Shown here one piece after another: positions 25,101-49,136 of a stretch of 64,000 nt of DNA. The notes under the pieces were generated by a model, which was not told the origin of the DNA, made no database searches, and saw nothing but the letters and a program-made list of their open reading frames with translations. The DNA is from Ascidiella aspersa (taxonomy: Eukaryota). The stretch lies in contig OZ004609.1 of assembly GCA_963924565.1 (NCBI GenBank), positions 24,304,001 to 24,368,000 on the forward strand. The letters run 5' to 3'. The position numbers and the translations under genes are program-made. The number at the start of each line of letters is the position of its first letter. Position 1 is the first letter of the stretch.

Positions 25101-26895
25101 ATACAGATAAGTTAGATAACTTGTTTTCCGAAATTACAAAAAGTTTCGCGGCACACTTGACAATCTCTTGAGGCATTGTGTGCCGCGGCATACAGTTTGG
25201 GAATCACTGGTTTAATGTAATAGGCCAGGCAGACATCAGCCTTCAGTTGCCGGTTAACTTGGCAATATCAGTATGGATAACCAATGCGAAAAGAATTACC
25301 ACATAATGTAAAAGTTATGGCCCAATTCAGCCGAAAGGCGTCGTGTAAAATCGTCACCTTTTCTATGTACCCAGAGCCGAGTGCTACCGTTATGTGGTTC
25401 AGAAATCAAATTCTGCCAAACTATAGCTAGTGCTTTTTTACTGTTTGGGCAAATCTATAATTTTTTGCAAAAGGCCATTTGATCGTAAACGTTTGTAACA
25501 GTTGTAACACCCGTCCTACATTTAAAACAATATAAACGTTTAATATGAGTTTTTTTCGCTTCGTGTGATCTATTTACATTATTTCGATGCAGCTATGCCG
25601 TTGTTGAGTAAATAGTGGTAATCTTTTTGTATTCACATTGCGTCAAGTTTCGTTTTAACAAAAGTTCTAGTCACTTTGGAGCATAATAGTTGGAGGTTGT
25701 AGTAAAACGTAATAAGAACGTCAAAGCCCATATAGAAGGACATACTTCTGTATGGACAATGGTTTTAATATTGCGTTTTACTCTGCACACTTTTTAAAAC
25801 TAAAACGCTCTAATGTGTTTTTTTAGATTATTTAGCAAAAAATTACTTAAGCGTTGACAAGTGAGTTTCCTACCGCTGTAAATCATCGCCGATAATAATG
25901 CTTTGTCAATTTTGTACTGGATCGGCGCCGATACAACCGACGAGGACCGATTTATCCCTTTGTTTTGGTTATCGCCTCTGATTCGATATTATCGGACACC
26001 CCTGGGCCCTGTTGGCCAACAGGGGGCGTGGCGTTATTTTGCACAATGTGCGCAAAAATGTGCGCACAGTTTAAACTGCCTTCCAAAATGTGTGCACTTC
26101 TCTTAAACAATGTGCGCACATTTTGAAGGCATTTTAAAATGTGCGCACATTTTGAAAAAAAGTGCGCACATTTTTGAAGGCAGTTCAACATGTGGGCACA
26201 TTGTTGAAAAAATGCGCACATTGTTAAAAAAGTGTGCACATTTTTTAAGGCAGTTCAAAATGTGCGAAGATTGTTAAAAAAAGTGACATTTTTTTTTTAA
26301 AAAAAAGTCACATTTTTTGCACATTTTGACGTGCACATTGTGCAAAAAATGTTCGCATCCCCGTCTCCCCCCTGCTAAAATACTAGAAAGGAAGTACTGT
26401 AGGTAGCGTTTAGTTTGTATATAAGGCAAACTACTATATAGCAAAGTCAACAATTTACTCGGAGGCGGATCTTTCACTTTCTGAACCCATTGTTTAGCTG
26501 TCAATTCGTCGACATTTTCAATAACATATCTGTCCAAAAGTTCTGGGTTTCGGTCTATGTAATTCTTTAGAAAACCTGGATTCTCGTCAAGGAACTCTGT
26601 CATCTCTGCATACAAAAAATAACTGTTTAGAAAGCGAAAAAAACCTAATTTGATATTAGCAATTTTTGAAACATTAACCAAGACACAACAAGTTGTTTTA
26701 TGGTGCGGTAGCTTAACCATATTCCATACAATATTAAAAGTTTTCAATTATGGATTGGAGGCAAAAAATATTTACAAATTTTATGTTTGCCTACATAATA
26801 CGTTATTAGGTCTATATTGATTTATTATATTTAAGGATTTTTATCTGCTAACTAAATTAATCTATTGTACCTTCTTTATCTATAGTGTTTCCCAT
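19138..26895 (-). CDS. Transglutaminase paralogue A (protein-glutamine gamma-glutamyltransferase), 15 coding exons, ~761 aa if the exon-3 frameshift is corrected; may be a pseudogene or null allele
   Basis: Exons (minus strand): 26895-26871, 26605-26459, 24404-24220, 23952-23843, 23626-23479, 23092-22845, 22488-22314, 21983-21792, 21510-21371, 21203-21047, 20970-20810, 20658-20538, 20356-20193, 19654-19500, 19294-19138. Motifs [10 protein letters not shown] (Cys codon 22342-22344), WNFHVWNE and [10 protein letters not shown] are present. Exon 3 is 185 nt versus 186 nt in both paralogues. Confidence 0.92.
23098..23260. repeat. GACTT/AAGTC-rich dispersed repeat
   Basis: Array of GACTTGACTTAAGTC-like units beginning CAGTGTTG. 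Related stretches occur at ~40650-40990, ~51466-51530 and ~53860-53970. Confidence 0.6.
24922..25209. mobile_element. hAT (Buster-type) MITE in TG-A intron 2
   Basis: Termini CAGTGGTTCCTAA / TTGGGAATCACTG, with a perfect TSD GTTTAATG at 24914-24921 and 25210-25217. Confidence 0.85.
26020..26374. repeat. TIR-bounded element filled with tandem palindromic AAAATGTGCGCACATTTT units
   Basis: Begins CAGGGGG...TTTTGCACAATGTGCG and ends TGCACATTGTGCAAAAAA...CCCCCTG (inverted). About 10 degenerate TGTGCGCACA units lie in between. Confidence 0.8.
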
Positions 26896-28987
26896 TTTTC
26901 TTGATGTAGCACAAAAAGCTTGCTATACTTTTTAAAAACCTGCACAGAAACAAAATGTAGAAACAAAACAGTTTTATGAAAAAAAATCATATTTTAAGCT
27001 TTGGTTAATTAGGCCCATCTCATTTTAATACTGGTTGTTGACTTTTTCATACTATTTCAACGACTACAAACGGGTAGTACCTTTTGTCACACGTTTTTAA
27101 ATTTATTTTAAACAGCCGTAAAAGTTTTTTTTATACATTTGAGTAAATATCACGTATAGTTTTACGGCTATTTTTGCTGTCTAGTCGATTTCGTATTAAG
27201 TTACAATGCTATACCGGAGCATTGTTAGGTTCACCACGCTACCGAGGCCAACAATGGACGACCCCTACGAGGGCGTCTACTGTTTAACCAAAAAAATAAG
27301 CCCACTAAACCGAAACCATAAAAATTGAAAGGCTTAGTTCACTTTTGCAAAACAACATGCAAGCCATCTTAACCGGCCCGCAACTGGTCGTCGTACTTAT
27401 TCGATCCAGTTTTTGCAAAACAGACGGGATATTATATTAAAACCCATCGAAGGCAACTCCGATTTGCAAAATGCAACCTTTTACTGGCGTCTGTTTTAAC
27501 GCGAGCTCCACTCTCGCTACAAATCTACGTTCAACGCAACCCGGCCTGAACTCCGGTTCGCATATGTATTGTCCACCTCCAGTCTGTGGCGTTTCATGGT
27601 CTGTCGGAGTCGAATCAAGTCTACTGTTATGCATCGCCAGTAGCGCGATAATAAACACACGGTAGTGTTCAGTGGCAATCTAAGGCTATTCATCTTTATC
27701 CCACTCGTCTGGCGTTTGAATAAAGGCCCCAGTGTATTCCTGACAGACCAAATGTTAAACCGTAGGAAAAATGACGTTCGTTTTTTCAAATTTAAAAATC
27801 CTCCACAGTGCACACGAACGGCAGCATAGCTGTGTATTTGAATCGCTAAATCCTCAACAATGCGCACGGATGGTAGCACTTTAGGTGCAGTGTTTTTGAA
27901 TTACAAAATCTTCCGCGTTGCCGCAAATGGTAAAATAGCTGAAAGCAGTGAAATCAGGTTAAGCCATCGTTCACTGTGCCTCGAAATAACCAACGAAAAA
28001 TATAGTGATACCTAACACCATTTTGTGTGTGCACAAGGAAAAACAAGTTCACAGTGAAATACCATAACTTCACTGTGCACTTGCAAAGATTGTGATTTAG
28101 TTAAAACTGATATTCGTTTACAGGATGCTTGCCAAACCACCTCACGTCTGGCATATGCGTCAAGAAACGATTACAAACGTTTAGACGCCGGTCTGCTTGA
28201 CGCCAGCTCGTTATAATAATAATTAATTGCTACTTAAGATAGAGCGTAGTTTTCTATATCTACTGTATATATTGTAAGCAAAATGCTAACGTTTACAGTC
28301 ACAAGCAAAACACTGTATGCTATTTGCCTCTGCACGCTTTTGTTAAACGACAGTGTAACCTAATATTTTATTCGGCCTTTGTTCTAAAAAACTTGTGTTC
28401 ACATCCTCGATTCCCAGATTAATTGCTCTTTAAAGCTTATTAAACAAAAGCAAAATCCCAAAGTTGGTTGCACTGTTCATTTACAGGATTATTTTTCAAC
28501 TCAAATACATTTACATTGTACATTGAAAATGATTCAAAACATTTTAAAAAGAGAAATTTTATTGCCCACTCAAAAAAAAACGGTATAGGCCATGGTTTAG
28601 GTTCCGTTAAAATTTGTTGCACGTACTTGAACAAAGCGTTTATGGTACCGACATTTTCAAACCGTTTTGTCAGGTATCTTAATTCACATGAATAGTTGGT
28701 TTAACTTTTTGCGTATCATTAAACAACAGCTTAGCAAATGTCATGAATGCAATTTAAGTGCTAGTTACAGTGTTAACCCGAAACAACAGCATTAAGCATA
28801 ACAATTTTACAAATTATATCTTGCGCCAATACTGCATGCATGAATATTTTCAAGACAAAAAAATGCGAAACCATTTTGTTAATTACATGTCTATATAAAA
28901 GCATTTGTATCAAACATTGGCATTTCTGCTGTATTAAGCCTGTCATAAAAAAGCACAGATATACACAGGCATCTAAAAGCGTAAAGA

Positions 28988-31900
28988 CTATATTTCGACG
29001 TCTTTTGTTGCGTTGACGTTTCTTAGCTGCGGGGAGTCGAAGTCAGCAATCAGACGAATTTCACCTTGTCTAAAGGTGAATAAGGCTGTAGTCTTGGTCC
29101 TGTATGTTTCGCCCGGTGCTATTGGGCCACTTTATGAAAACAAAGCACGTTATGACTCGCATTCATGCACGTTAAAGTATACGCTTTATATTGTTTTACT
29201 GTTTTCATATTTTTCCTTTCGCGTATGAAACAGAACCCAACATTTGGTATTTTGTACTCCCAAGTTTTGATAAGGTAATCATTGAAACTACTTTCAGCCG
29301 CGGAGCCTTTAGGCTTTAGGCTACCGCCCTGAGTAACTTTTTAATCACCATTTGTAACCGTAAGTTCGACCTGAAACGTACAATCCAAACAAATCTTTTT
29401 TTTTATAACTTACGTAGCCAAAATCTTTTCAGCAAAAACTCCCGGTGAGTCTAAGTTGAATACTCCGCCGGTAAGGGCAACTGGCAAAGGATTGGTGATG
29501 GATAAAGAAATATCGTCAAGAGAGTAGTTATCACCGCCCTAAGAAGAAAGTGAAGGACAGTGGATCACAGCTTTTTATGGTTTGCTGTACTCAAGTGTAA
29601 TCAAGGTCATTACACGACTGTTTTACACACTTAAAAGTGTACGACGCAAACGATCAAACATGATTTATTTCCATAACCTACTTGTTTACAAAAGTTAAAA
29701 CTTTTAATAATTAATAAAATAAAAAAAAACTTAAATACAGTGAACCTTATGGTGCTGTATAAATATTCATCCGAGAAATCATACTTTTTTGTCGGTATAT
29801 ATTTAAATATAGAACAAGTCATACCATGAAAATTCACAGTAAAATTTTACGAGCTCTGTTTTGGAAATAATAGTTTACGGTAATAATCTTTACCATTATT
29901 TGAAGACATTTAGGGCTTTCGATCTCTAGATCATAGCTTTCCACAAAGAGGTCGGTGCTGTCGTTAATTCGGACTGTTGTGATGACCGACACAATATTTT
30001 CGTCAACCAGCAAACTCCCATATTCACCATATAACATCTCCAGAGTTTGTTGGTCCTCTGTAATTTTAGAGATGTGTCTTACGTTACTGAGGTTTTACAA
30101 ATACACAAACCGTTGTGCATAGAAGTAATATACTGCAAATTTGTTCAATCACGATGCTTTGGAAGTAAGATTTTTTATATATGTGGCACAGGTAAACTTA
30201 AATTATTTTGACTTACTCGTTTGACTTGGAATCATTGCCTCCTTTTTAACTTGTTTGATAAATCCACTTCTTTTTCCGGTGTTAAGAACGCTATACATGA
30301 CCGTGGTGATCTGGACTGTGACATCTTTTCCTAGGTCGTTTTTCACCTAGTAACCAAACTGGCTTTTTAATTCATATTGTTTTTAATTGGGTACTGAGGC
30401 TTGGGCAAAACGAAGTGAAAAAAAAACACAAAAAATAAGCAAAAATTTGAAAAAATTTAAGGATAAAATACTACAAAGGAGCCAAAATAAAAGCGGGTAA
30501 CCAACTTCAACTTGCAGCTTCACGTCATGGCCGGTAATAGCTTCTCCCACGGGTTTGATGTCGATCAGAATTCCGGTCTCCTCCTGGGCCATAAAGTCCT
30601 CATGCCACTCTTTCTTCACGCCGTGAGAGAATGCTCGTTCGAACGCTTCACGTTCCTCTGGCGTTCCTGTCATATAGGATTTGCAAACATATATTTTGTC
30701 GCGGAGTTCGTTGGAAACTCACTTTAGGGGCCGCTGCGACGAGTTATGCACCATAGCGACCTTTTTAGATTATCTAACAAAAAAAAATATTTTCAGTAAA
30801 AACCACACATTGGCTGTATATTCGTTGCTCGTTTTCTCTAGACTTTGTTGTAAAAAAATATTTAAAAGAACTGCAATAAATGCGTTTTCCGATAAATATC
30901 CACTTTGTAACTACTTTGATGGCTAAAATAAAGCGAATCTGTAGATTTATATATGCACGCCTTTTTAGACAGTTTACCTTCTGCAAACTTGTAATGATCA
31001 GTCACGTCGTTTCTTTCTTGGGAACCGACTGCCTTTGTGCTGATTTTACGACCCACGTGGCGTGGAACCCGCTTTATCATCCCGGTAACATCACCGGCTT
31101 TATCGACTCTCCAGTATACTACGTCAGCGTTCACCTTAAATGGCACAATGTATAATGCAAAATGACTTTTAAATTGGTATAACTAGTTGGTAACAGAAAA
31201 AAATCCGTTCGCTGTTTAGTGATTCCTACCTCGCTAAAAATGAACTCGGTATCTTTTCCGATATACACCTCCCCTTTCTTTATCGCTTTGATCGGACATG
31301 GACCGCATTGCATGACACCTTCACTCTCTTCTTGTGGCGTAGCATCCACTGCTTGCCATCCGTCATACCCTACCCCGATACACATACTTGCTTAAGATTT
31401 TACAGAAATGGTCTGTATATTTGGATTTATTGTTGGCTGCTGAGCGACGACGAAAGAGTTGTTTTTAGGTACATTCGTCCTTCTATGCGTATAGGCCAGG
31501 GGTCGGCAACCCCTGGCACGCGTACCACTTGTGGCACGCCAATTAATTTAACGCTCACGTTATATTACCTTAAGAAAGTGCAACCATTACATCACTAACA
31601 CTAGCTCTAACTAAATGGTTGCACACATTGCCAGTTCGTGTCACAAATAAGTGTCTGAACTGTGTTGTATTTAATATTATTTTTTGTGGGCGTACTTGTT
31701 GTTTACCAACCGTTCGTATTACGTCACAATGCCCCAAATTTGGCGTAACGTTTAATACGTTAAAGCAGGGCATTCTAAATCAGTTGTTCTCAACCGCCGG
31801 TCCGCGTCAACTTTTTAGAACTTAGCCAGTTCCATAATTTGCAACATTGTGATGTAACATAGAGTTAACGGTCTACTTTGGACTTCATCTTACGTCACAA

Positions 31901-34900
31901 TGCTGCAAGCGTGTGCCCAACTATTTAAAAGTAGGCTACAACTCATTTAAATCCTAAACTTTAAGGTTGAGAACCACTGTTCTACATTAAAAGTAAGCAC
32001 GTGTGTTTTTGTGTGACTGAGAAACCAACAAAAAGCGAAACTGATAGTTAACACTTCTAGGTATCGCCTTAAAAGCATCGAAGTACATTTCAAAAAAAAA
32101 AAAAGGAAACATAGAAAAATGTTTGGCACGTGAGTTGTTATAATTTTGATATTATTCATAAACTGGCACACTGCGTACGAAAGGTTGCCCACCCCTGGTA
32201 TAGGCCATGAGTCTAGAATTTAGATCGACGTTGCAAATGCTGTACGTTCAGATAATAATTCTGTTTTAAATCGGCTGTTTTTTCAAATAGCTTATGCGGC
32301 GTTTAGTATAGGCGATCGACAATCTCGAGATTAACCTGTAAACTGTTATGCGAGGTGGAATGAATAAAGCACTTACCAGGCACTAGATCGGGCCTTGCGA
32401 ACCACGTCTCGTTCCACACGTGGAAGTTCCAAATCGAGTCGTTGATGTCCGGCTCATCGTGGGTGTTGCCATCCTCGTCCATAAATTTATCGATGGTCAA
32501 TGTAAAGTCGGTGTCGTGGGCCGAGCTGAAATTGGTTACCGGGCGCGCTGGTATGCCGATCGCTCGAAGCACTTTACACAGCAACACATAGTTTAATAGT
32601 TTCAAACAACTCAAAAATAGACTTTGAAATTCCCACTAACCCCGCTTAGTTACGTAGAAGAGAGAGCCTCGTCACACGTTGGTCGAAAGTAGCCTACTTT
32701 CTCGTTTATCAAATTTAGTGTTACCTGGAGTGGGGCAATTTGCCGATCGTTAGTAAAGAAGTTTATTTTTTTATTATTTAAAACAAAACTATACGCATTA
32801 CCAAAAATATCTACAGCTATTGTAACATTACGGTACATTTATACCAGTTGTCATAACTCCTGCGAACACCCAGCATTGTCCATACTGGACAGATTTTTTC
32901 TCCTTGTTCCATTGGTTCAGGATTGTTTCACTGCTCTTCCAAACCGACGGGGATATTCCGTCTGAGTACTTTCCGTCCCAACGTCCATCCAAAACGCCAT
33001 TATTATTTTGGCTGTTAATCTGTCAACATTTAGTTAATATTACACCGAATTGTTGTATCGTAGGATATTTTTCATTCGAAACACGAACACACATTACCCT
33101 TGTACTGGCCAGCACTTGATTTGTGAACCTGCTTTTAGGTGTGTTTCTCAGTAAAAATAACATTGAATTAAAATGATAACAACAGGCTTTTTGATAAGCC
33201 CTTTCAGTCAAATTAAATGTAATGACAAAGTATGGCCTTAGCCGGAAGGGCTTTACCGACCTATTACTTTAGCCTTAATGACATTACAGCACATCTGTAT
33301 AGCTGCTGTGTGAGTACACACGTGACTTCTAACTGTATTGCATTGTCTTGCAGATAACACATTAAAAAACATGATAGATTAAATGCAGAATTATAAAGTT
33401 AGTTATGTTTTTTATTTGCCGCAAAGTGTATGAGATTTTCTATTCCTTCTTTCCATTTCCCAATCATAATACGCAAACGCCTAAAACACAGAATTTTCCA
33501 ATCATATTGCACCAAATTGGGAATAGCCTATTCCTTTTTTAGTTTGAAATTATGTCCAAAACATCTTATGACTGATAATTTTGGGTAGTTTGCATGAATT
33601 GAGATGCAAATTAACAGTGAGATATGCAATACTGCTTGTTTCTAAAAGTGAACTCACCATGGCCGACAACACACGACTGCAATACACCGGCGACGAGCGC
33701 TTCTTCAAGCTTTTAATTTTGTTTGCCGTTGGGTTTTCTCTCAGCAGCTTTAGAGCGATACCGAGGATGCCCTCTTCGAATTGAGCGTAAATCCACTCTC
33801 GCGAGCTAATCTTCCTGTAAGATCCTCTATAGAGCAGTCCGCGGTCATTGAGAACGTACTCATCGGTTTCATCGTTGTTTTCCATATAGCATACATCACC
33901 TCAAACAAGAAAGCTTTTTTATTCTAGGAGGCTTGGTTTCACATTGCAAGCAATGTGGTTAATGCGTTGCTACTTGATGGTTCTAACATGTATGTTTGGG
34001 TTGCTGCTCTCACCTGGACTGAATGGGTTGAAAATGACGATGACAGACTTTGAGTCGATTTTTGCCTTCTCCGCTCCACCCTCTGTTTCACTTTCGACTA
34101 ATACGGAAAGATCGTACTTGCCAATGATCGCGTTCGAAGGGATGTTGACAAGCAAGCTCACCTTAAAGTATATGGTCAACATGTGAAGCACAAGCAACCA
34201 CAAACCCAGTCGGGGGCATAAAATAAATGGGTAAGAACAGAAAAATGTAATTAAATATGGTTTTAAAACTAATAATCAATATACACACTACTGGCTTTAA
34301 ATCAGTTTCATTTACCCCGAATCATTTTATCTATGAAAAAAGGCGCTATGTCGATTACTTTTTTGTTCGCGTCATCTTGTTCAGCGATACTTGCCGACCA
34401 TTTGCTTGCTTTCAATTCCGCCACTGGAACTTTGATCTTTGTGCCATTGGCAAATGTCGGGTCCGGGCCTATTGATAAAACATGCTATTTGAAGATTACT
34501 TAAAGTGAAGATTTAAATATTCCCCCAGCAAAGGATTTATACAATACTCTAGTCATAAATGAATGGAGTTTAACTACTGGCCAAAGGTTTATCTTATAAT
34601 ATAAATACTAAATAAGAAAAAACTAAAGCAATTTTTTTAGATTTCTAATAATATTTCCAGCTAATTTCATCCAACATTTTTATTTTCGTTATATTGAAAA
34701 ATTATTTAGCATGTATCAGACTCGTTTCTACTTACCAATCGAAAGCTCAAAAGTGATGTTGTCTTTTTTAGGAAGAAAGGCTCGATTATTGAAGTAGATG
34801 TCGATATTAAATGTATCCGATCGTCGCAAGACTAAGTTAGTGTTGATATACTTGTCGGTATGGTGACGTTTCGTATTCTTTTCCTTTAAAAAGTCCAGTT

Positions 34901-36197
34901 TTCTAACTTTCAACAGTTCACCTAAAATAATAATCGGATTTTGACATAGTTGTATTAAGCATTTCTACTTATAGTTTCGAAATAAGTCTATTAAACTACA
35001 ATAATAAGTAAAGGAAAACAAATCTATATAATTATTTTTATCAGACTGTTCTGTCGATGAATAACCTTCCTTTTAGTTGCACACTCAAAAATGAATAGAT
35101 AGCCTATGTGTGATTAAGTACACCATTGAGTCAAATAAAATAAACAAAAACAAACACTTTCGCATATTGTACGTTGTAGACATTTAAACAAGCGTGACAT
35201 TGCCTTTTTTGCTAGAAATTCCTTTTCTGCATTCTGACACATTAGATAAATGCCTTTTATGCATTTGTTTGATAAAAGTCAATATATGGCCTTTCCACAA
35301 TCAGGAATTCACAAACTGACACAGGAGGGTTTTCCAGTCAAATCCCGATTTTTGTTTGGGGTATAGTGTAGTGGGGAAGAGCATGTTTTTTAGCAGTGAC
35401 GTCAAAAAGTGACGTTATAAAACAAAAACAACCTTACAAACCTGGAACATAGGTCTAACTCGTGCAGAAATGTGCAACTGAAACATCGAGAACGTCTAAC
35501 AAGTTTGCGCGTAGCGGCTGAAAAAACGATTGCATTTCGTACATTGCCTGATATATACGCGACAGAACAAAGTTTTCGTGTTAGCCTATGGTTACACAGA
35601 AAACCTGTAAAAATTTTGAATAAGGCCGTTGTTCTCTCAAGGTTAAAAAAAAAAAAAAACGGAAATTATTGGCGCGCATAAAACGAATATATATCGACGC
35701 ATGGCAGTTTTTTTGGTAATTTTTTTCTTACAAAATGAAATAAAACCTGCGCATAATGATGATCGCTTTGTCGTTGAAGACCACTGTATTCAATCATTAC
35801 CGAACCTTTCTCCGGGCTGTGGAGCATAAGGCTCCATTTGCTGTTACTTATATACATTGGCACCAGTATAGGTTAAGTTAATACACTAATTTAATGACTT
35901 ACTTGGCACCTGCTCTTTAACATTTTCCAGCCATTCTTTTAGTGTCAATAAGTCAATGTTTTCCACAACATATTTATTGAGAAATTCCGGGTTCTGGTCA
36001 ATATAATTCTTCACAATACCGGGATTCTCTTCAAGGTATTCCGTCACCTCTGAAAACATGAAATTTATTACAAGAGGCGGTTTAATAGGTTGTATTGTCA
36101 ATAATATGTTATTTGCTATAGCACAATCAATATCTAATGTACCTTCTTTATTTTTTTTATTTCCATACTGGCTGTATCCCATCCTGACGTTGTACAT
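28988..36197 (-). CDS. Transglutaminase paralogue B, 15 coding exons, apparently intact
   Basis: First coding exon 36197 (or 36182)-36143 M(YNVRM)[12 protein letters not shown]; exon 2 36049-35903; exon 3 34921-34736. [10 protein letters not shown] (Cys codon 32873-32875), WNFHVWNE (~32410-32432) and DATPQE (~31330-31346) are present. The last exon reads GPIAPGETY...KDVEI* ending at 28988. Intron positions match TG-A. Confidence 0.92.
31497..32197. mobile_element. hAT (Buster-type) MITE in a TG-B intron, carrying a nested MITE
   Basis: TIR CAGGGGTCGGCAACC / GGTTGCCCACCCCTG, with TSD GTATAGGC at 31489-31496 and 32198-32205. Confidence 0.9.
31781..31979. mobile_element. Nested hAT MITE
   Basis: TIR CAGTTGTTCTCAACC / GGTTGAGAACCACTG, with TSD TTCTAAAT / TTCTACAT. 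Confidence 0.8.
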
Positions 36198-37391
36198 TTT
36201 CGTTAATCTGCAGCTGGTTACGAAAGTAAATATTTTTCTGTATATTATCACAAATAGAGAAATAATAAGATCAAAAAAAAATATATATAATATACTTATA
36301 TATACATACCAAAGGTCCACCATGGTTATAGTACCGTTATACAATAATAAGAGGCTAACTTTCTCTATTATGTTTTATATAACTAGCAGACTGGCTACAA
36401 AAGTGCGATACAAATTATTTGCTATTTTGGTTTAACGTTTTATCACGTAACGTATCCCTGACTTTTTCCTACTAAATAGCTGTGCTTATTATTTGCCCGG
36501 GGCCTCCATTTGTTGAATTGCCTTTAACCCTACTCAGTTGGCGTTCACCACGTCTAGCGTCACGCATCGCCAGTCTCGTGAAAATGGTTGTTCGCACGAA
36601 CGGACTTTTTCATTGGCGCTCGCCTCGTGTAAAATATAGAAAATTTCCATTGTGTTGTATTGGTATACTGCACGTCGTGAATAAAGGTTTTTTAAGGTAG
36701 CTAACCTACTGGTTTACGAGTGTCTTAAATACATCAGCGCCCACTGCCTGTTCAGTCATCTCAAAAACCTCTCGCGATTCAAATTCTACAAATTGTTTTT
36801 ACCGCTTCATTTGTTTACATTACTTATGGTCATATTTCAGTCTTTTTTGCATTTTAAAAGAACTACGATTTACTTGTGTAACACGGGTTGAGAAACTTGT
36901 ATCAAAAGGTTTACCAATAATAACGCTCGTAGGAATAACCTTTTGGCCTAAAGCGGCATTCTACAGTAACCAATACTCTGACAATAAACCAGTAGGCCTA
37001 CATTCAACACAAAAATGCATTATCGTATGATGTGCTTCATTTATTGTTATGTATAGTTAAGCGTTTGGTGTAATATACAAAATGCACACGTTAATACGCT
37101 TAAATTATTAAGGTTTGTTAGCCAGGTATTGGACAAAACACAACGATATTTGTACACGAAGTTTGATTTACTGAATCACATTAAGGTACAAAGCCTGATC
37201 TACCTAATTACAGTTACATGAAGGTTAACGAAAGTACAATTTTAGGGTAAATGTACAATTTCTGTGGTGCAATCTGTAGCTGTCAAACTTTATGCATTTA
37301 AATTCGAAAAAGTCAGGAAGGAACTGTATTGCAAACTTTAAAACGAAATATTATTACAAATACTGCATAGTTTGTGTCGGAAGTCGTGCGT

Positions 37392-40300
37392 TTACTCTAC
37401 GTTAACGGACTTGTATGCCTTTATGTTCAAGATTTCCTTGGAGTCGAAATCCGCGGATAAGTAGGTGCGTCCGCTGCGATAAGGACGAACTTCGACAGGC
37501 TTGCTCTTGTAAGTTTCGCCAGCAGCAATCGGACCGCTGGAAGAACATTAGCAAACGTTACAAACGACAGACATGCGCGTAACCTTTCTGTAATTAAGTA
37601 CACTCACACGAATCTATAGTGTAACTTAAAGCAGCGAGGCCATAAACTTCGAGTAATCGATACTATCTTTACAAATACGTTTCGATACGCACTTGTATCA
37701 TCGTCTGTAATAGACCTTTGTAATCTGCTTGCTTATTTCTGTGTATTTGTAGTTTAACAAAAATAAGACTAAGACTGCGAGCATATCTCGGTAGCAATCG
37801 AACACGTTGTATATAACTACACATGATGTTAAAAGCATTTCCAGACGACTTTACTCTTTAGCGCCACAAAGTGTCCACAAGTTTCATTTACTTCGTGTTT
37901 CGTTCGACTCACCGAGCAAGAAATGAGTGGTTCACGAAGCAAAACTTTTACTTACGCTTCAACGCTGACCCCGTTGCTGACTCCGAGTCCTTCCACGTAG
38001 AAAACTCCAGCAGTTAAGGCGATCGGCAATGGATTGGTGATAGTAAAAGTTATCGTGTTGTACTCACGGCGCCTCAGGGTGTCATCGCACTGCAATCAAA
38101 CGTATAACACTTTATCAAGGTTCAGGCTTTGCGTTGTTTCAACATTTATATGTATATATCGTAATATTGGGAGACGACGCAAAATTGCACAGTCTCAAAA
38201 CCTGCATGTTAGGCACCATCGCTAGCTTTTTATATTTATCGTGCATTGGCATAGATTGTAGAGTTTTAGCAAGAAAGCAGCCTGTAGCAGTGTAGCAGTC
38301 ACACAAAAAATCTGCTTAAAAACCATTTACTACGACTGCTTTATCACCAAGGCTGTTTATCTTTTTCAGATTTCATTAGCACAGATTTTTAGGTCGCCCC
38401 AAAAGTAGCGACGGCTTTGTGATTCGATTTACAACTTTGTGCTCAATAAATACTTTCAAACATAATAAAGAAAAAGAGAGCAAACAAGTAGTTTAAACTC
38501 CAACGTTAGTGTGCCACTTGACGAGACCTGTCGCTCCATTAAGTTATCGTCATTAACATGTGCCTATGTGCGGCTCCGTGTAGGAATACAGCCGGGCACA
38601 TGAAAACTTCCCAAAAAAGGAAAAACATCATAAATTTCAAGTGATTTGAATTTATTTCCTACCTCAATAGTTAGGCATTTTGGATTGTCCAGTTGGAAGT
38701 CATAGTTATCCACGTACAGTTTGTTGGTCTCCTTCACACGGACAGTCGTCACAACTCTTATCACGTTTTCGTCAGCGAGCTGAGTTCCGTAGTCGCTAAA
38801 TGCGAGGACAATTGTCTGTTCGTTCTCTGAAAAAGAAGCTACCGATTACTAATTGCACAAACGTTGACCAGGGATATCGGATCTATTAAAAAGCAATGAC
38901 ATTTCTTGACCTATATTTTTCGTTTTTTAAACGACAATATTTTCCAATTTGACCTTCATTATAAATCTAAATAAGTTTTATAAAGTTATAGCACTTCGAC
39001 TATATCAAAAAAATTCCAGGTTCATCACTGATCAGCTCCTATTTCGTTTTGTAAGTCAAGAGATTTTGGGGAAACTTTAACAGCGTGATGGCATTTATAT
39101 AAGATGTCCTGCAGTGTAAATAAAAGTCGCTAAATACAGTGTATAATTGGAAAGAAGCCGGGTGATATTCTTTTCTGCCAATTGACAAGGTGTGCCTCTT
39201 TGCAATTAACAAGGTAAAAAATGTGACACTTGGTCTATGATTGGTTGGCCACCCCTGGACATAAAAAGTATAAATATATATAATTGTTTTTCCTCTAATA
39301 AGATAAATGCTAGGTTAAGCAAAGACTATCCTAAAAACAAGGCCAAGCCAAAGCATTACCGAGCTTATACATTAGAAAAAGTATGTTTGACAATAATTTT
39401 TACCGCTCTCGGCGGCCAACATAACATCCTTCTTCACGCGTTTTACGAGCGCCTTCCTTTCGTCGTTGTTCAGCATCGTCTGCAACACTGTGGTCACGAG
39501 CAGGTCTTTGGATTCCTTGGTCGTGTTTTTGACCTGAAATGCGAGTATGCGCAACGATCAGATGCCAAATCGGTGTGAAGGCAGCTTGTATTTCCTATTA
39601 AATTGTTTGTCACTTTGCTCAACACTGAAACCTGTTTACGGCGCCACTCTAATCATATGCGTATTGCGCAACGTTGAACTGCGTTTCATGTTACATACTA
39701 TAGTATAACCTGAGTATATTGCCATTTTTTTATTGAACAACCTTATTTTACCAAGTATGTAGTCTGATACTGGTATTGCATTAACTCCTAATTGAAATTT
39801 CCAGTTCTATGAAAAGAGGCTATTATTCAAATCAGACTGTATCCAGTGGTACAACAAGAATGTACTCCATCACTGGAATATCGCCGTGTCTTCTTAGAAT
39901 CCTGGGCGATACAACTCAATCTAGCACCATGAACGTTAAGCAAGATACATTTATTGCACCTTCCTATCAATTTTTGTGCAGTAGCGGCCAACAGAAGGCT
40001 GCAGCCGGTTATCACGTTTTCACGTTATTCACGCCTTGTTTCCTTTTTTTGCCTCGTTTTACCACCTTGTTTTTTTCGTCGTTTTTCTTCACTGTATATA
40101 TACCTCTGCAAGGTTACAATTTTATATGCCCTGATAAACATTACCTGGATAGGTTATCGAAACGTCGGTACAGAATAAATATTTGTCGGAAGAACCCTCT
40201 TTATAATCGCAGGAATCATATTTTAGTGTTATACACTTACCAGAATCATTGCGGTGACTGGCTTTCCGTTCATGGCCTCGTCCGTCCTTATGTCTATGGT

Positions 40301-43300
40301 GATCGCTCCTTCCTCCTCAATGACGAACTTGTCGTGCCAGTCGGCCTTTCTGCCGTGGGCGTAGGCACGCTCGAATGCTTCACGCTCCTGTGGTGTCCCT
40401 TCAACAAGAAATCGCACGCAATTGCTTTTAAAACGGGATTTTAAACTGTTCGAGACAACAGGCACAAAACATTACTCTCCAGGAATTGATGGAGTAGAAC
40501 CATCTAAATTGTAATTAATTTCCATATACGCAGCTAATATATTTCGATTTTGGCAATGACTGCTTTAAAACACCTAACTATTTTATTTTACTTTTCAATA
40601 GTTGATTCAATTTTAATATTTGATACTTTTTTCTGGAGGTATTTTACCCCAGCGTTGTAAACTCTGACATAAGTCCCACTAGTTATTTGTCAAATAACTT
40701 AAGTCCAAGTTATGTTATTTTTGACAAATAACAGCCAGTCAAAGTTATTGCCAAAGCCATACATGTAATTTGCATTAAAAGTTAATGCTGTCTCTATTCA
40801 GAGCAACTTATTTTGCAGAGAAAATGTTAAAAAATGAAACTAACTTAATTATTTTTTTATTCTTAAACCTAATTTAACTAAAATGTATTCAATTAAAGCC
40901 CTTGAATTTAAGTCCAAGTCATGTCATTTGTCCAAATAACTTTATGTCAAGTTGTCCCAAAATTATTGAACTTAAGTCAAGTAATTTTAAACGACGAAGG
41001 CTTTACCTTCTTTGTATTTGTACTCGTCGGTGACGTCATGTCTTTCGTCAGAGCCCACCGCCTTGGTGCTGATGTTACGACCGACGTCACGTAAGGCGCG
41101 CTTAAGCAGTCCATTCACTTCTCCCGATTTGTCCACTGACCAGGTCAGCACGTCAGCGTTTACCTTAAATCGAGCGAAAATTTTCTTACGAAATTAAAAA
41201 AAAATAATTCACTTTACAGCAACTGCCAATTAGTATTTTTAATTCTGTCGTGTGTATCGCAATAAATTTTCTGTGGTTCATTGGCGTTTCTAATCTATAG
41301 ATGGACGTTACATAGATTAAAGTTATTGAGAAACTAAAATTATTGTTGATGAAGCCTACTTTGTTTAGGTATGACGTCGATGCACTTGACTTATTTGGCA
41401 TCAGCTTTTCACGAAGATCCTTTAAACTGTTCCCCCGCCAATTTTAAACAAATAATGTTATTCCGCTATATTCACACCTCGCTGAAGAGGAAGTTGGTGT
41501 CGTATCCGACGTAGATCTCGCCATTCTTTACCGCCTTCACGGGCGCAGGGCCGCACTGCATCAGTCCGCTGCTCACCTCCTGCGGAGTAGCGTCCACCGC
41601 CTGCCAGCCGTCGTAACCTAATGCATCACAATTTTTTAGAATTTTTTTTAGAAAGTACAAACAACTTACATAAGGTATTGTCACTGCAAAACAGAAAAAC
41701 TTCAGTATTTTTTTAAGAGTATGGAGGTATCCTTATTAACAACAATAGGTTATTAAAACGCAAAAATGCGAATTCGGCCAGGAATATCAAACTTTTTTCG
41801 TCCTAATGTACCGTTCAATTAACATAATAATTATTTTTATTTTTCGCTTAAAGTTGTACTTAGAGAATGCAGCTGTAGGCTAATATTTATAATTTCTTTT
41901 TTATAAACAGTACGAGGCAACGCAAAAGCAAATAACATTAAACTAGAGTGACAAGAAGTGTAATGCAGGAAGCCCAAAATCTGACGACACTACCCTCTTG
42001 TTTTCATATACGCCAAGCGTCCCACTACTACCTTTGGGCAAGTCTGGCCGCTTAAAGTATCCCTCATTCCAGACGTGAAAGTTCCAGATCGAGTCGTATT
42101 GATCGACTAAGTCCACCTCCTCGCCGTCCTCGCCGATGAACTTGTCGATGGTCATGTTGAACTGGGTGTCGTGCGCCGAACGGAAGTTTGTGATTGGGCG
42201 AGCGGCGATGCCAATGGCGCGGAGCACTGGCGAAATATAGAAGCGTTATTCCATATTTTGCGTTATTACAACTGAGGTTTTTTTTTGGACAGAAGTGAAA
42301 AAATCCACCGAGAGGCGCCGAAATGCCAAACGTTGAATATCACACACAAATGTCAATTGCTATAATAAATCTTATTCAGGTCTATTTACGTTATCACCTT
42401 ATCACATATTAACACTAACGCCGGAAAGCACGACCGAAGTCACCAAGAAAAAGTGAAATGTCTTGTTGTTTATTCCACACGAACCTGAATTCTAGCAGTT
42501 TATTTAAAAGTTGAAAAATTCTCTGAAAAAAGTTTAATTTTACAGTAGTTGAGAATCGGTTAGCTGCACATTGTTCAATTTCCCAATACCTGTAGTGAGC
42601 AGACCGGAGAAAACCCAGCACTGTCCAAACTTGACAGGCTTGTCAGTGCTGTTCCACTGCTTAAGGATCTTTACACTTCCGTTCCAAAAGGTCGGACTCT
42701 TTCCGTCTTCATACTTTCCACTCCAGTTGCCCCAGAGAACGCCGTCGTCGTCATTAACATTCACCTATAAATTCGAAAGATAAAGCAATGTGATTTTGTT
42801 GTTCACAATGCCCGGCAAATCCATGCTATGTTTGCACGAATTAGTAGGATCCAAACCGCAACCTTATTGCCGATATTGACGAAAGTTTAACAAAAGCGTA
42901 ACAATTCAGTTGTTGTTTCCTCAAAGCACTTATGCTTACGTCATTGCTTTTAGATATATACGTAGTACTGCTGGCGAACATTAGACCGCGAAAACAAACT
43001 CTTCAAAGAGTTTTGATTTTACCTAAGCGATATTATATCAGCAAATCGGTTCCGAAGTTAAAACATTGAACTTATTTGTCCACTTTTATACACGGGTATT
43101 GTTTGCTGTGCAGTCCGTGAACATCTTGATCCTCTCGGGTGCGAGCTTACCATTGCGGAAAGGACGCGGCTGCAGTAACTGGGCGACGACCTCTTTCTTA
43201 GGCTCTTCTCCGGGTTCTTTTGCGCTCTGCCATCCTTGCGCAGCATCTTAAGAGCGATGTCGAGAATACCCTCTTCGAACTGGCCGAAGAGCCAGTCCCT

Positions 43301-46300
43301 TTTTCCGATCCTGTAGTACGAACCAACGAAGATGCAACCCCGGTCGTTCAGCACGTACTCGTTGCGATCGGCAGAGTTTTCCATGTAACAGTCGTCGGCT
43401 GTAAGTAAAAGTTTTACTTGAATAGTTCGTCGAATTCTTACAAAGGAAGGTAAACACGGAGTTAAAGTTACAACATGAAGGCGTACCAAGGGACGATATA
43501 CTTTACTGGAAAGGGTTAATCTGACAAAATCGGTATTGACATTTAGACAAGTTAAAATACCCTTAACGACATAATTGATGGTCGTGAACTTGCAATCATT
43601 AGGAAAGGTCAATTGCCAAATCAAATGTCTGTAACAGTACAGAATAGATCTATCAACCCACATATGCGACCTTCATTTTTAGAAATACTTTAATGTTGCT
43701 CTGAATATTGACCTTTTAAAAACTACGATCATTTAACTAAGTTTGCAATTAGCCACTACGGTTATTCGGTGATATTCGTTTTATCGCTAGAAATGCCTTG
43801 ATTTATTCGCATACCGACTCCAAAATAGCGAAGTCATATATTGTTCATTTATTGTTTTTTACTTTTCTGCTTACCCGGACTGAATGGGTTGAAGATGACG
43901 ATGACGTCAGGTCTGCTGGTAGTTTCGGTTTTCTTTCCATCCTCGAGTTCGCTTGTGACGCGAACCGAAAGCTTGTAGCGGCCGATCAGTGCCTCTGCCG
44001 GGACGTTGACATCAACGCTTATCTAAACAAAACATTCATTGCAAAAATAAATCAAGGAAAAATGGCAATTTTGCAGTGCATCAATGTTGCCAACTGGGCT
44101 TGTTCGGTGTATAGCGGTTCGTTGTGGCCAAATAGATGCTCACCCAGACGTTAAAAAACATATTTTTATCAAGTTGATTTTAAGCTTTACAAAAACACAT
44201 TGATGCCTTAAATCGCTTTTGGACGTAGTTGAATCCGTTGGATGTGCTATGCTTAAAATCTTGTTTTTAAAAATCTACCTTCTTGTTTTCAGCATCCTGA
44301 TCCATTAACATGGAAGTCCACTTGCTTCCTTGAAGCGAGTCCTTGACGGGAACCTTGATCAAAGTTCCTGCTGCATACTTGGGTTTTTCACCTGAAAGGT
44401 AAAATCAATGTCTTTTTAATTCTTTTAACCTCGAGGATCATCTATAGCCAGGAACACCGGTGATAGTTTTTAATTCTTATTAATATTTGCAGACGTGCCA
44501 ATTGGATACAGGTATTTTGAAATATTGCGAATAGTCTAACGTTCGTTGTATTTAGCTCGAATGTTCAATAGTGAATTGCGAAACAAGTAACAACGATTAT
44601 GGCCAACTAGTTTACTTTTTAAGGTAAATATGACTGCGCTTTGTTTTACAGGCTATCAGCATTCCGGACATATTTACTGATAACCGACCAAGCACCGACG
44701 CTGTCCGCTTTATTTATTGTGTTTATTTCGGCATCAATCTTTTGGTTTTTAATGCTATTCTTAGGAGATGTCCGCCTTGGGCAAACAATTTAAAACATAT
44801 TTTAGTACATTGGTGAACCTCCAAGTAGTTAGAAGACATCGTAAAATGCGCGGTACATGTTGTAACGATTTTCATTTGAGCTTACATTCTTTTGAATGAT
44901 AGAAAAGTACATTTAACGCCCATAAATGAACGTTTTGACATGTAAATGAATGTCATACTTGTCATACTTATGACGCGAAGCCTTTTAAAGTTGTACAGTC
45001 ACTTTCCTCAAGCGATCGTGACAGAAAACATTTCATATTGTTGCAACTTGCAACACAGTAGCTTCAACGGACAATAACGCATGCTAAGGCTTTCGAGTTT
45101 GCCCAAATCTTATTCTAATTTGGAGAAATAAATACAACCGAAAGAGACCAATAGCTGGTGCGTGCAGTAAACTATCGGGATTGTGCTGTGACGAACAAAG
45201 TCGTACGTTTGCCAAAAGGAAAGACGCTTGTCCTTATTTTACCGCATGCATTATATTCAATAATACACAATACAATTAACGGATGGACGTTTGACAGCAC
45301 TTTGCACTTTTTTAATAAATGGTAAACGTTTCTATTTATATGGCGCCACATAAACCGACAATGGAGGGCGTAAAGTTTATTGTCGTTCAACAGGATGGCG
45401 AAATCGTAAACGAATTAAAGCTAAATCGTATGGTGATGTATGCGTGTATGCGTGTGACTGTATGCTTTTGCACGTGACTCATTACGTGCACTGCATAAAC
45501 GAAAATAAAATGTCAAAAACCAATATTTTTGGATTATTTTTATTTCCTGATTACTTTGGATCAGTTTGCAATGGCTCCAACCTATTAGTTTAATTTTTAA
45601 AGGCACTCGTGGTTTGCATAGGCTGGCATTAACGCTTATCTACTTGTTTTACAAGAAGATTAATTTTACGACTGTGGTACTGTTTCACGATCTATGAATT
45701 CTGAGTTTTGTCTCGAAGAAGCCCAGATGGAAATTTTCGAATTTTAAACCTTTAGTTATATTGCAAGCGAATCTACAATCCTCAAGTCTGCGGGTTTTTT
45801 GTCAAAACAAGTTACGACTTGTGTTGGTTTGGCTGGAGCCTGTATTCCTAGGTTTGATTTTGGAAAATTCAAGATAGCTAGGAACGCTTGTGATTTACAG
45901 GAGTTCCTACACTAGTTTCGGAACTCAGCCTATGGTGAAATAAAAATGTAAACCGGGCTACATTTGATTTGTGGCAAACGCTTGTAAATGTAATAAAAGT
46001 TTGTCACCTAATTGTTTTTTTCAACGAATCAACACCATCAACCAGTTGTAAACATTTGTGCTATTGCACTTTCGGAGGTTTATACGGTTTAGGATTAAGT
46101 TTGTGTCTTGTCTGTATCGAAAAAGGTATACTTGTTTTATAAGGTGCAAAAATATGTTGTTACACATCATTTCCTCTTTTGGTTCTCTGGGAAACTACGT
46201 CATAACAATAATAAACAAAGGGTTTAGTGGCGCTTGTTGTTGCGGACGTATACTTCCGATAAAAGGCACATTAATCGCGGGTAGGGATACCCTAGAAATG

Positions 46301-49136
46301 TTTTATACCTATACCCGATATTTTCAGCAAAAAGTAAGCCTATATGACCGTCCGATGTCAATATACATTGACAAAATACCCAACTGAATAAACTCACAAC
46401 GTACAAATGAAATGTTAAAAAAAAATTGTTTGGCGGTAAAAAGTTATAGGTTACTTTACTTTAGATGGTTAATTCACAATTTGTTAAGAAATTTACATTT
46501 TTATGGTAAAAACTTTTCGTTGACTCATAGGCTTAAAATGCACAAGTAAATATGATGCTGCAACGGCACCGGTAGGACCCTAGATCAGACAAGTACTACA
46601 CTACCACTTGGCATAGAATATCGCCTCCGAACCGATGTTATCGGACATCCCCAAACGTCCGATCCCTAAGACGAAAATCCAGACGAAAATTATACGCCAA
46701 AACGAAAATTCAATTTCCCACAAAAGTCGCGCCAAACACACGTAAAACATTTAATTTCTCTTGTGCAGCAAACACATGAGCGCCACGTTTCGCCGGCCAC
46801 TTCGACAACACAACTGCCACTTACCGATGGAAAACTCGAGAACTATTTGGTCCTTGGCCGGCAAGTAGGCGCGATTCTTAAACAGGATGTCAAGGCTGAA
46901 ACGCTCAGCGCGTCGGATCACCAGGCTGTTGTGGATGTACCTGTCGGTCCGGTGAGAAATCGTGTTCTTTGCCTTCAGGTAGTCCAGCTTCAGCACTTGC
47001 AGCACGTCGCCTTAAAACAGCAGTGGAGCTAACTTAAACCGACCCCAAAACGCAATGCCACGCTTGTGTAGGCTTGTAAAAATCGGTTGCGTTTCATCTA
47101 CTTGTAGTGCTATTTTGGCAAATAAAATTATGCCAGCAGTGTTTGCCGTTTATCGCGGTAAACCGCCTCACAAATATGTCCAGTTGAGCAGAATTTAGCA
47201 AACGTGAATCCATGCTATTTAAAGTATCATTCCTTGGGGAGGTAAAGCCAAGCTTTAAATATATGATGTCACGGTTTAATACAACGCCATCGCTATGTTT
47301 ATATATTCACCTATGTGTAAGAGAAATAAACGGCAAATATTGAAAACACTTAAAGGTATTTAAATACCTGCTGCATTCAAGAATAAAATGTGGTTATTTG
47401 CAAATAACAAACATGTCAAATTACTAACACGCCGCCCTATCAATCTATCGGTAGAATAAAAGTTATGCTCGCAGAGAAAAATATCGCAGCATTCAACCGT
47501 TTAACAGCATAGCAAATGGTTGCAAAATGGTAAAACACTGCAGAGTGCGAATATCTCACTTGGCGAGGGCGCCTTGACTTTGCTGAGCCAGTGCTTCACA
47601 GTAGCTTCGTCCACCTTTTCGTACACATAGCTGTCCAACAGATGGGGGTTGCGGTCGATGTAGTCAACCAGGAATCGAGGGTTATCGTCGAGAAACTCGT
47701 CAACCTCCTCTGGGTCTTTAGAATCTGCAAAGAAAGGAGACATTTTGTTAGTTTGGATGCTAACAACAGAATTGCGCCTAAAAGTTGAAGAAAATTGTGC
47801 CTAAAAGTTCAATATATGCTGATGGTTCGTTTGCAAGCCCGTCCAATTTACGGCCGTTGCCGTTACTTATTAGCTCCTTATAAATGCGCATCCTAGCAAC
47901 AATAACTTGTAACAATACACGGGAATCTATTTGAAAGAGAATTTCGCTTACAGTAAAAATAGGTTGCTTCTATTTCCATGCACAATCTTACCAATCCAAT
48001 AGTAACGTCTGGGCATTTTGATGAGTTTCCTGCCACTTTCACGTTTAAATTAGTTAGTTTTTACTTTTTTGAAGCTGGTATAATATACTGTGGACTCGTA
48101 TTACAAACAAGGTAAGCTGTTTTAAGTAAATTTCATTTAAAATAGAAAACCATTGACGTTTTCGCAATAATATACAATGCACAATGCACATTAAGCTAAA
48201 CAACGGACCAGTACAACACATAATTTATTTGTCTATTTTCTGAATGAGAAACACATAGTTCTACCGTAGACCTTCCCTACAAATGCTACAACTGAAGAAT
48301 ATCGTCTGCTGTTCACAGTGAAGAAGTGATAAGTTACGAACAGCCGTCCGTGGTGAATAAGGTTAATGTGTTTTCCCTTGTGGCGATGTGACAACGCAGA
48401 AAGCAAGCGAGGTTCAAGACGCTGTGATGACAATCTTTATTTGTGCGATTGTATCAGTCTCAAATAGCACTCATGTAAGCGCGGGAACTTAATACTGTTT
48501 GAGTTGTGGAAACAAGAACAGCAAAGCCAACCCATTGCAGAAAAGCTTTCTTAATAGGGCACCGCTGTATGTTTTTGGCTAAGCTTGTATCCGGGTATAA
48601 CGCGCGAACAACAATACAGTCTAGACGTGGGTGCGGTTGTTATATATTTTATCGGGGGGTATATTTTCAGGGCTTTGTATTTATTTTATTTTAAGTTATA
48701 AATTTCAAAACAAAAATTTCGGCCCATATAATTAAATGGCATTTTAGGTTTTAAGGTCCGTTTGCACTACAGCTGCGCTGAGCTGAGCTGGGCGTAAAAA
48801 TCGCTCCGAAACGTAACGTTTTTCTATAGCTGCACTGGGCTTGAGTTTAGCAAAGAGTGAAAAGTTTGAAACAATAGAATTTGAAACAAACTACTCTTTG
48901 CTGAGCTCAGTGCAGCTGTAGAAAAAAACGGGCCTTTAGGTATAATACGGTGTAACCAGTGTAAAGTCGTTTGATCAGAGAATTCATTTGGGGCGCTTTG
49001 CTTCCATTAAAAATACATCTAAATCCAGCAGTTAAATGAATAAAAAGCAATACTTAAGTCACCCGCCTTTATCAAATGAAATATCTAAAGAATATGTGTT
49101 ACCTTCAACTTTTTCTTTTCCGATCTCGTTTCCCAT
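37392..49136 (-). CDS. Transglutaminase paralogue C, 15 coding exons, apparently intact
   Basis: First coding exon 49136-49103 [11 protein letters not shown]; exon 2 47724-47560; exon 3 47010-46825. [10 protein letters not shown] (Cys codon 42618-42620), WNFHVWNE and [10 protein letters not shown] are present. The last exon reads GPIAAGETY...KSVNVE* ending at 37392. Confidence 0.92.
40650..40990. repeat. GACTT/AAGTC-rich dispersed repeat (TG-C intron)
   Basis: Repeated ACTTAAGTC(C)AAGT / TTTGTC(C)AAATAAC units, similar to the reverse complement of 23098-23260. Confidence 0.5.
48754..48935. mobile_element. PIF/Harbinger (Tourist-like) MITE in TG-C intron 1
   Basis: Inverted termini AGGTCCGTTT..CTACAGCTGCGCTGAGCT / AGCTCAGTGCAGCTGTAG..AAACGGGCCT, with a 3-bp TTA on both flanks (48751-48753, 48936-48938). 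Confidence 0.7.

Follow-up and report, generated by a model that had tools for sequence, protein, structure and literature searches.

Transglutaminases (TGs) are usually described as fixed four-domain enzymes, to which lineage-specific tails, such as the activation peptide of FXIII or the anchor of TGM1, are added that govern activation and localization. A 2024 study of TG evolution that includes Ciona reports that the TGMs of tunicates form a cluster separate from the other TGMs; neither 'N-terminal' nor 'amino-terminal' occurs in its main text (PMC11152450). In an unrelated enzyme family, the pony-tail (Pt) motif of phosphodiesterase (PDE) 6 has been characterized as a dimer interface of ~895 Å², formed by flexible helices of two chains (PMC6392808; PMC11725853). 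Here, we analyze a window of 64,000 nucleotides from Ascidiella aspersa (GCA_963924565.1, contig OZ004609.1, positions 24,304,001 to 24,368,000 of the forward strand; the window is this whole stretch, and coordinates refer to it unless stated otherwise), whose minus strand carries three tandem TG genes, TG-A, TG-B and TG-C, each with a short additional exon, here called the module exon, in front of the TG beta-sandwich. We consider it likely, with a probability of roughly 0.6, that these genes are tandem paralogs of an ascidian-specific TG clade that carries an N-terminal accessory domain of ~50 residues, the helices of which would act as a tethered protein contact module. A first-pass annotation of the same DNA had instead likened the peptide encoded by this exon to the N-terminal helices of GAF-containing PDEs.

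Three tandem transglutaminase genes and their module exons

All three genes are read from the minus strand, and translation of the plus strand at the peptides quoted in the first-pass annotation yields only stops. Their structures were derived from open reading frames (ORFs), from tblastn and from transcript data placed on positions 33900-39899 only, the latter comprising X4, an RNA-seq run, and X3, a run with spliced contigs for which no type is recorded. Searches of the window were done exon by exon, with public full-length homologs used as proxies, and gave the following features:

37398..48016, minus strand: TG-C gene span, ~15 coding exons (ORFs, tblastn, X4/X3 splice joints in the 3' exons)
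47992..48016, minus strand: putative first coding exon of TG-C, read from sequence (ATG 48016-48014; MPRRYYWI plus 1 base; donor G/GTAAG; ends in phase 1)
47560..47724, minus strand: module exon of TG-C, phase 1-1, 54 codons (full codons 47561-47722)
46823..47008, minus strand: first beta-sandwich (Transglut_N) exon of TG-C, approximate boundaries (Pfam PF00868, E 5e-13; tblastn with Ciona and Clavelina TGs)
28991..36197, minus strand: TG-B gene span (ORFs, transcript contig, tblastn)
36143..36197, minus strand: first coding exon of TG-B (ATG 36197-36195; 18 codons plus 1 base; X3 contig reaches ~36200 and is spliced 36143/36049)
35903..36049, minus strand: module exon of TG-B, phase 1-1, 48 codons (full codons 35904-36047; both junctions in the X3 contig)
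34735..34921, minus strand: first beta-sandwich exon of TG-B, spliced straight to the module exon (X3 joint 34919(+2)/35901(+2); tblastn)
19150..26895, minus strand: TG-A gene span (ORFs, tblastn)
26871..26895, minus strand: putative first coding exon of TG-A, read from sequence (ATG 26895-26893; MGNTIDKE plus 1 base; donor G/GTACA; ends in phase 1)
26459..26605, minus strand: module exon of TG-A, phase 1-1, 48 codons (full codons 26460-26603)
24226..24402, minus strand: first beta-sandwich exon of TG-A, approximate boundaries (tblastn)

An AG acceptor precedes each module exon and a GT donor follows it; with two extra bases ahead of the full codons and a single base behind them, both exon ends are in phase 1. 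The claim that every paralog possesses a phase 1-1 exon ahead of the beta-sandwich thus holds, with the minus-strand coordinates exactly as reported in the first-pass annotation. The three peptides show 60-65% pairwise identity and share 20 invariant positions. Further upstream, the putative exon 1 of TG-A and exon 1 of TG-B end alike (...AAAGAAG/GT), and the exon listed for TG-C would be its first by analogy with TG-B. A second in-frame ATG in the first exon of TG-B would give a protein starting with MGYSQ.

Transcript evidence for the module exon comes from an X3 contig (1066 nt, depth 202) with joints at 36143/36049, 35903/34921, 34735/34467 and 34357/34159, which read CT..AC and hence GT..AG on the minus strand. 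These joints place the module exon in the TG-B mRNA between the short exon 1 and the first beta-sandwich exon. The exon, whose absence from spliced transcripts had been named as a refutation of the proposed architecture, is therefore retained in the transcript of TG-B. The X4 reads within 33900-39899 covered only the 3' exons of TG-C.

The exons downstream of the module encode the expected TG domains. Pfam detected Transglut_N (PF00868, E 5e-13) on the TG-C exon and Transglut_core (PF01841, E 5e-6), and the homologous beta-sandwich exons of TG-A and TG-B were located by tblastn; the small barrel exons, searched individually, gave no Pfam match. The Cys-His-Asp motifs GQCWVF, HVWNE and DATPQE are intact in the ORF translations of all three paralogs, and residues ~9-764 of the TGs P0042 from Ciona (766 residues) and P0044 from Clavelina (762 residues) are collinear with each of the three genes in tblastn. 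Neither a GAF nor a PDEase domain was found in the window genes by Pfam searches of the exons or by tblastn. An AlphaFold2 (AF2) model of the full-length Clavelina TG (pLDDT 86, pTM 0.85) was aligned by Foldseek with TG3, TG2 and FXIII-A, with TM-scores of 0.82-0.86. Since only ~700 of its 762 residues align to these structures, and since the module itself has no Pfam match, it is not part of the canonical four-domain body, as had been proposed.

In the 3' exons and the untranslated region of TG-C, the RNA-seq reads or contigs differ from the assembly by single bases at positions 37118, 38039, 38075, 38696, 38702 and 39421; all reads depart from the assembly at 38696 (G>A), 38702 (A>G) and 39421 (A>G). 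These differences look allelic or strain-level and do not look like editing.

Repeat structure, predicted fold and distribution of the module

The first-pass annotation had noticed an internal 11-residue repeat in the three peptides. In an alignment of 26 module sequences, column similarity was +0.23 at an offset of 11 and ranged from -0.65 to -1.7 at the other offsets between 1 and 22, and the value at offset 11 was reached by 0/2000 column permutations; the repeat is real. The unit has the form h-h-x-x-N-P-x-h-h-x-x (h, hydrophobic) and occurs in two clear copies and one degenerate copy, after which come a helix containing an invariant Trp and a P-x-P linker; a hydrophobic pattern, hh.....hh..hh, recurs along the module. 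ORF fragments in the genomes of other species end in P-x-P-[GS]-K, as read-through of a phase-1 /GTAAG donor would give, so that the 3' exon boundary of the module and its phase appear to be conserved.

For the TG-C module alone, AF2 with the 26-sequence alignment predicts four short amphipathic helices of ~10 residues each (residues 4-13, 15-24, 26-36 and 39-49; pLDDT 88). The same four helices are found at residues 13-60 of the full-length Clavelina model with a pLDDT of 65-73, residues 1-15 being disordered and the body scoring above 90. No Pfam family was detected for the three peptides or the 26 module sequences, the sole match being Ddi2_HDD in 2/26 at an E-value of 0.19; the models PF09280, PF17830 and PF23195, which stand for the NP-rich helical domains of the STI1, XPC-binding and UBQLN type, did not match any of the 26 sequences.

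A profile of the three module peptides, searched against 1.84 billion representative proteins, produced 31 matches at E<1e-3 in four groups: short module ORF fragments from eukaryotic contigs; a single full-length TG, P0023, whose module spans residues 20-65; and the prokaryotic array proteins and one-unit fragments treated below. When only the module region of P0023 was used in a word search, nothing but P0023 itself was retrieved; among the best 120 of the 2952 TG matches obtained by word search, the closest named relatives of P0023 are ascidian TGs. A hidden Markov model (HMM) scan places the module at residues ~12-65 of the TGs from Ciona intestinalis (P0042, 92 bits), Clavelina lepadiformis (P0044 and P0045) and Phallusia (P0046) and, in divergent form, at the same residues of P0076 and P0092 from Styela clava, and some unnamed TGs, such as P0068 and P0069, have a reduced module. 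Within the same best 120 matches, the scan detected no module in the TGs of amphioxus, fish, Ptychodera, Amphiura and Tubulanus or in those tunicate TGs that have a Cys cluster. In a tree built from a single exon of 85 residues, and to be read with caution for that reason, the module-bearing TGs group together (support 90/87), apart from the module-less tunicate TGs. TG-A and TG-B are sisters in this tree (100/99), and TG-C falls into an unresolved group with the TGs of Ciona, Clavelina and Phallusia (94/86). Because the module is common to ascidian TGs of three orders, it is far older than the local triplication; the survey of TG orthologs thus bears out the suggestion that it was gained before the genes multiplied.

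We read the module as an apparently undescribed accessory domain of ascidian TGs, the proteins themselves being already present in UniRef and NCBI (e.g., those of Ciona and Clavelina). A literature search on ascidian and Ciona TGs, read at the level of titles and abstracts, yielded no description of it, and it has no Pfam model. To that extent, the architecture appears to be new, as the first-pass annotation, which did not recognize it as described, had suspected.

Similarity to phosphodiesterase N-termini and to other NP-helix proteins

The resemblance to PDE N-termini was followed with profile searches. In the PDB, the best single-stretch match was indeed the N-terminus of cone PDE6 (PDE6C; residues 4-28 of 6x88_A and 21-40 of 9cxg_A), and its E-value improved with the depth of the profile, from 0.16/0.55 with 3 sequences to 0.015 with 12 and 0.0068 with 26 sequences; a PDE5-PDE6 chimera was matched at an E-value of 0.06. 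The matched part of PDE6 is its Pt motif. However, these values are borderline, and the same searches returned comparable scores for AlkD (E 0.004, summed over repeats) and the XPC-binding domain of RAD23 (E 0.1-0.3). Database-wide, no PDE or GAF protein is among the 31 matches at E<1e-3, and none of the long matches of the three-peptide profile contains GAF or PDEase domains.

The genome of A. aspersa offers an internal comparison, as one PDE gene of the relevant type was found in it:

G000:C8:11052773-11061166 (L011), minus strand: single GAF-plus-PDEase gene detected in the genome (own-genome search)

Its probable first coding exon (L011:8720-9166, minus strand) contains an ATG, lies ~1.7 kb upstream of the first GAF exon on the same strand; its attribution to the PDE gene relies solely on where it lies and on its strand. 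It carries the motif stretch '...SDPGLIEEFILNTYRPHTIRKWLAIK' / '...ADALKILSDLATSDPGLIEEFILNTYRPHTIRKWLAIK...' and is the best non-TG match of the module HMM once loci fetched by module similarity are left out (HMMER, 14.7 bits, E 0.0027 against 2613 six-frame ORF pieces). Alignment of the module with this exon by hhalign gave a probability of 55-73% (P 3e-5 to 1e-4) and a score of 28.2, compared with 8.7 +/- 1.9 for shuffled sequences (maximum 17.9), so that 0/400 shuffles reached it. Against this stands that six-frame searches of the genome with the profiles A1 and A3 did not recover the PDE exon at E<=10; in addition, no relatives of 98-313 residues were found for it in a word-indexed protein database. 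The exon ends in phase 0 (donor AAG/GTAAGC), and a PDE motif in a phase-0, start-codon exon provides no counterpart of the symmetric 1-1 exon of the TGs. The module exon, for its part, is spliced directly to the Transglut_N exon and hence does not precede the GAF-A domain of a PDE. Taken together, the matches between the module and PDEs are weak but repeatable, with borderline statistics. The likeness to PDE N-termini put forward in the first-pass annotation is thus weakly supported, by PDE6C and by the PDE exon of the same genome; homology of the module to the PDE helices is unproven, and the similarity constitutes a lead.

The 11-residue unit itself is not restricted to TGs. Prokaryotic proteins with a YLxxNPxhhxx unit (P0001, P0007-P0010, P0012-P0014 and P0025) match the three-sequence module profile at E-values of 1e-24 to 1e-10, with 4-29 stretches each. 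They share the repeat unit with the module but, unlike it, are secreted or membrane-anchored proteins of bacteria or archaea, form arrays of 10-29 units and contain neither a terminal Trp helix nor a TG, whereas the module lacks a long array (10+ units) and consists of its two clear units and one degenerate unit before the Trp helix. Judged from sequence, the likeness to these array proteins is probably confined to the repeat unit. The existence of such tandem arrays in prokaryotes indicates that a generic helix-NP-helix motif can arise repeatedly, which makes convergence plausible. As to the array proteins themselves, P0009 and P0010 have a signal peptide and a C-terminal transmembrane anchor, and one array protein of 3580 residues has a Por secretion tail. 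The arrays also draw many overlapping Pfam matches (UBQLN1, XPC-binding, Ddi2_HDD, Hormone_3), which look spurious.

Five fragments among the 31 database matches, each consisting of one unit plus the Trp helix (P0017, P0022, P0026, P0027 and P0029), have E-values of 6e-8 to 6e-4. They may represent either PDE N-termini or the N-termini of TGs with a reduced module like that of P0068 and P0069. The five fragments had no match in two metagenome scans, and with profile A3, which combines them with their flanks, the PDE6 match was lost and the PDB matches were at chance level. The trimmed profile A6 matched NCOA4, BcfH and DUF484 in the PDB at E-values of 0.015 to 1.6, including BcfH, a ScsC-like DsbA protein (7jve_A, residues 2-52 and 26-39), at 0.15 and a DUF484 GAF protein (3e98_A, residues 34-46) at 1.6. 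The N-termini of BcfH and DUF484 carry motifs of the 'YLxxHPEFL' type, and BcfH was also matched by VIA-align with a Z-score of 2.9. The N-terminus of ScsC is a trimerization domain (PMC5524982). Like the module, the STI1/UBQLN/XPC-binding domains and the N-termini of ScsC and DUF484 contain short helices begun by N-P; none of these similarities is significant and no Pfam model matches the module consistently, so that they are leads only. The own-genome search also returned weak matches to the module profile on C6, namely a 29-residue ORF piece, 'HYIEQNPQVLEVYVF', within a thrice-repeated element, which was rejected as a chance match. The three copies of this tandemly repeated element (G000:C6:7627889-7627957, 7652058-7652126 and 7676884-7676952; L004-L006) are ~24 kb apart, and the ORF piece, 'AVTIRTPFLPCIFVHYIEQ[NK]PQVLEVYVF', has a TAG inside the match.

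Possible roles of the module and comparison with known systems

How might the module contribute to the function of these enzymes? The accessory domain, made of 11-residue units, the Trp helix and the P-x-P linker, has its own phase 1-1 exon, which sits between the beta-sandwich and a very short exon 1 (8-18 codons; about half of the relatives start with MG). In the model that we favor, its four amphipathic helices, as predicted by AF2, would present a tethered surface for protein-protein contact at the N-terminus of a catalytically intact TG, mediating either self-association of the TG or the docking of a partner or substrate. Several observations weigh against this model. The pLDDT of the module falls to ~70 in the full-length context, and the model of the isolated module found no neighbor in Foldseek and reached a best Z-score of only 3.4 in VIA-align; with no convincing structural neighbor, a compact fold of the module is not established. 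Moreover, exon 1 of TG-A and TG-C is putative, read from sequence alone, and the taxonomic range of the module was drawn from the best 120 of the 2952 TG matches together with unnamed metatranscriptome proteins.

Other explanations would give the module a different origin or task. According to the one put forward in the first-pass annotation, it is homologous to the pony-tail of GAF-PDEs (PDE5, PDE6 and PDE11), was shuffled onto a TG as an exon and forms an intertwined dimer bundle that gives rise to homo- and heterodimers. The PDE6C match, which strengthens as the profile deepens, the dimer interface formed by the Pt region, the performance of the L011 exon against the shuffles and the position of the motif at the extreme N-terminus in both protein families all argue for this idea, which we nevertheless regard as doubtful, given the lack of any PDE or GAF protein among the 31 database matches, the comparable scores of AlkD and RAD23, the plausibility of convergence raised by the unrelated prokaryotic arrays, the failure of the A1 and A3 searches to retrieve the PDE exon, the position-based assignment of this exon and its deviating phase. 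Alternatively, the module could serve a lipid-anchored TG as a spacer or adaptor close to the membrane, functionally comparable to the anchorage region of TGM1, with a myristoylated Gly2 as the tether and the helices setting distance and orientation. TGM1 and the TG-A of Drosophila are lipid-anchored. Ten of 20 module-bearing TGs start with MG, and 5 fit a PROSITE-type myristoylation pattern; the putative exon 1 of TG-A in the window encodes MGNTIDKE. In addition, module-less TGs of Ciona and Phallusia have Cys clusters, and fish TGM1 has the sequence '...WLRKVCPCCCP' at the equivalent position. Yet TG-C (MPRRYYWI), Ciona P0042 (MSRF...) and others lack the MG start, and TG-A fails the PROSITE pattern because of an Asp in the fifth position after Gly. 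A spacer function of the module appears unlikely.

A third type of role, for which we see even less room, would be the control of latency: in the manner of the FXIII-A activation peptide, the module would hold the TG inactive as a pro-segment that can be removed or displaced, with release by cleavage near the P-x-P linker. The module does occupy the corresponding place directly before the beta-sandwich, its linker is conserved, and across the four body domains the full-length model agrees with structures of the FXIII-A zymogen. However, the sequence of the module does not resemble that of the activation peptide and contains no evident protease site, and the prediction is of a folded, helical segment and not of an extended one; nor does its lower AF2 confidence in context point to close packing against the active site. 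A latency function is quite improbable.

Independently of the module, the N-termini of these and related TGs show several features of their own. MG starts or myristoylation-type patterns are exemplified by exon 1 of TG-A and by P0043, P0044, P0070, P0076 and P0092, and the TGs of Ptychodera and Amphiura start with MGSGAS. These N-terminal sequences suggest that lipid anchoring of TG N-termini may be widespread in invertebrate deuterostomes. In fish TGM1 (P0084, P0110, P0151 and P0125), residues ~40-60 read '...ENAC[RQ][RQ]WLRKVCPCCCP', just before the palmitoylated Cys cluster, and this stretch shows a weak alignment (E>1) to '...TVxxWLxKVxxPxP', which comprises the final helix of the module and its linker. 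The likeness may be left over from a common ancestor or be due to chance.

It is tempting to go one step further and speculate that NP-helix N-termini constitute a portable self-association mini-domain, placed before unrelated bodies in GAF-PDEs, ascidian TGs and perhaps also DsbA proteins of the ScsC type and DUF484 GAF proteins, which would turn monomeric ascidian TGs into regulated homo- or hetero-oligomers among the tandem paralogs; we hold this extension to be improbable. If the module of the ascidian TGs is indeed a folded, conserved extra domain, it would give the vertebrates' sister group a new handle for TG regulation. A domain model for it would improve annotation. If the PDE pony-tail proves to be truly related, a small oligomerization element that can be reused would be defined, and with it a tractable study system, such as a recombinant Ciona TG; if there is no such link, the module would be a modest, lineage-specific domain addition.

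In comparison with known systems, the module resembles the Pt motif and the N-termini of GAF-PDEs in its location at the extreme N-terminus and in the pattern [YF]-L-[DE]-x-N-P-x-F-x-x-x-Y; in the PDE of A. aspersa, as in the module, this pattern is followed by a '...T-h-x-x-W-L-x-x-K' helix. The two differ in what comes next, GAF-A in the PDEs and the TG beta-sandwich here, and in the number of NP units, which is one in GAF-PDEs and two to three in the TG module. Among TGs, the activation peptide of FXIII-A and the N-terminal extension of TGM1 occupy the same place as the module. Like canonical animal TGs, the three paralogs have four domains and the Cys-His-Asp motifs; unlike them, they carry a conserved helical extension of ~50 residues with an 11-residue periodicity, which has no Pfam model and is unseen in the non-tunicate TGs examined.

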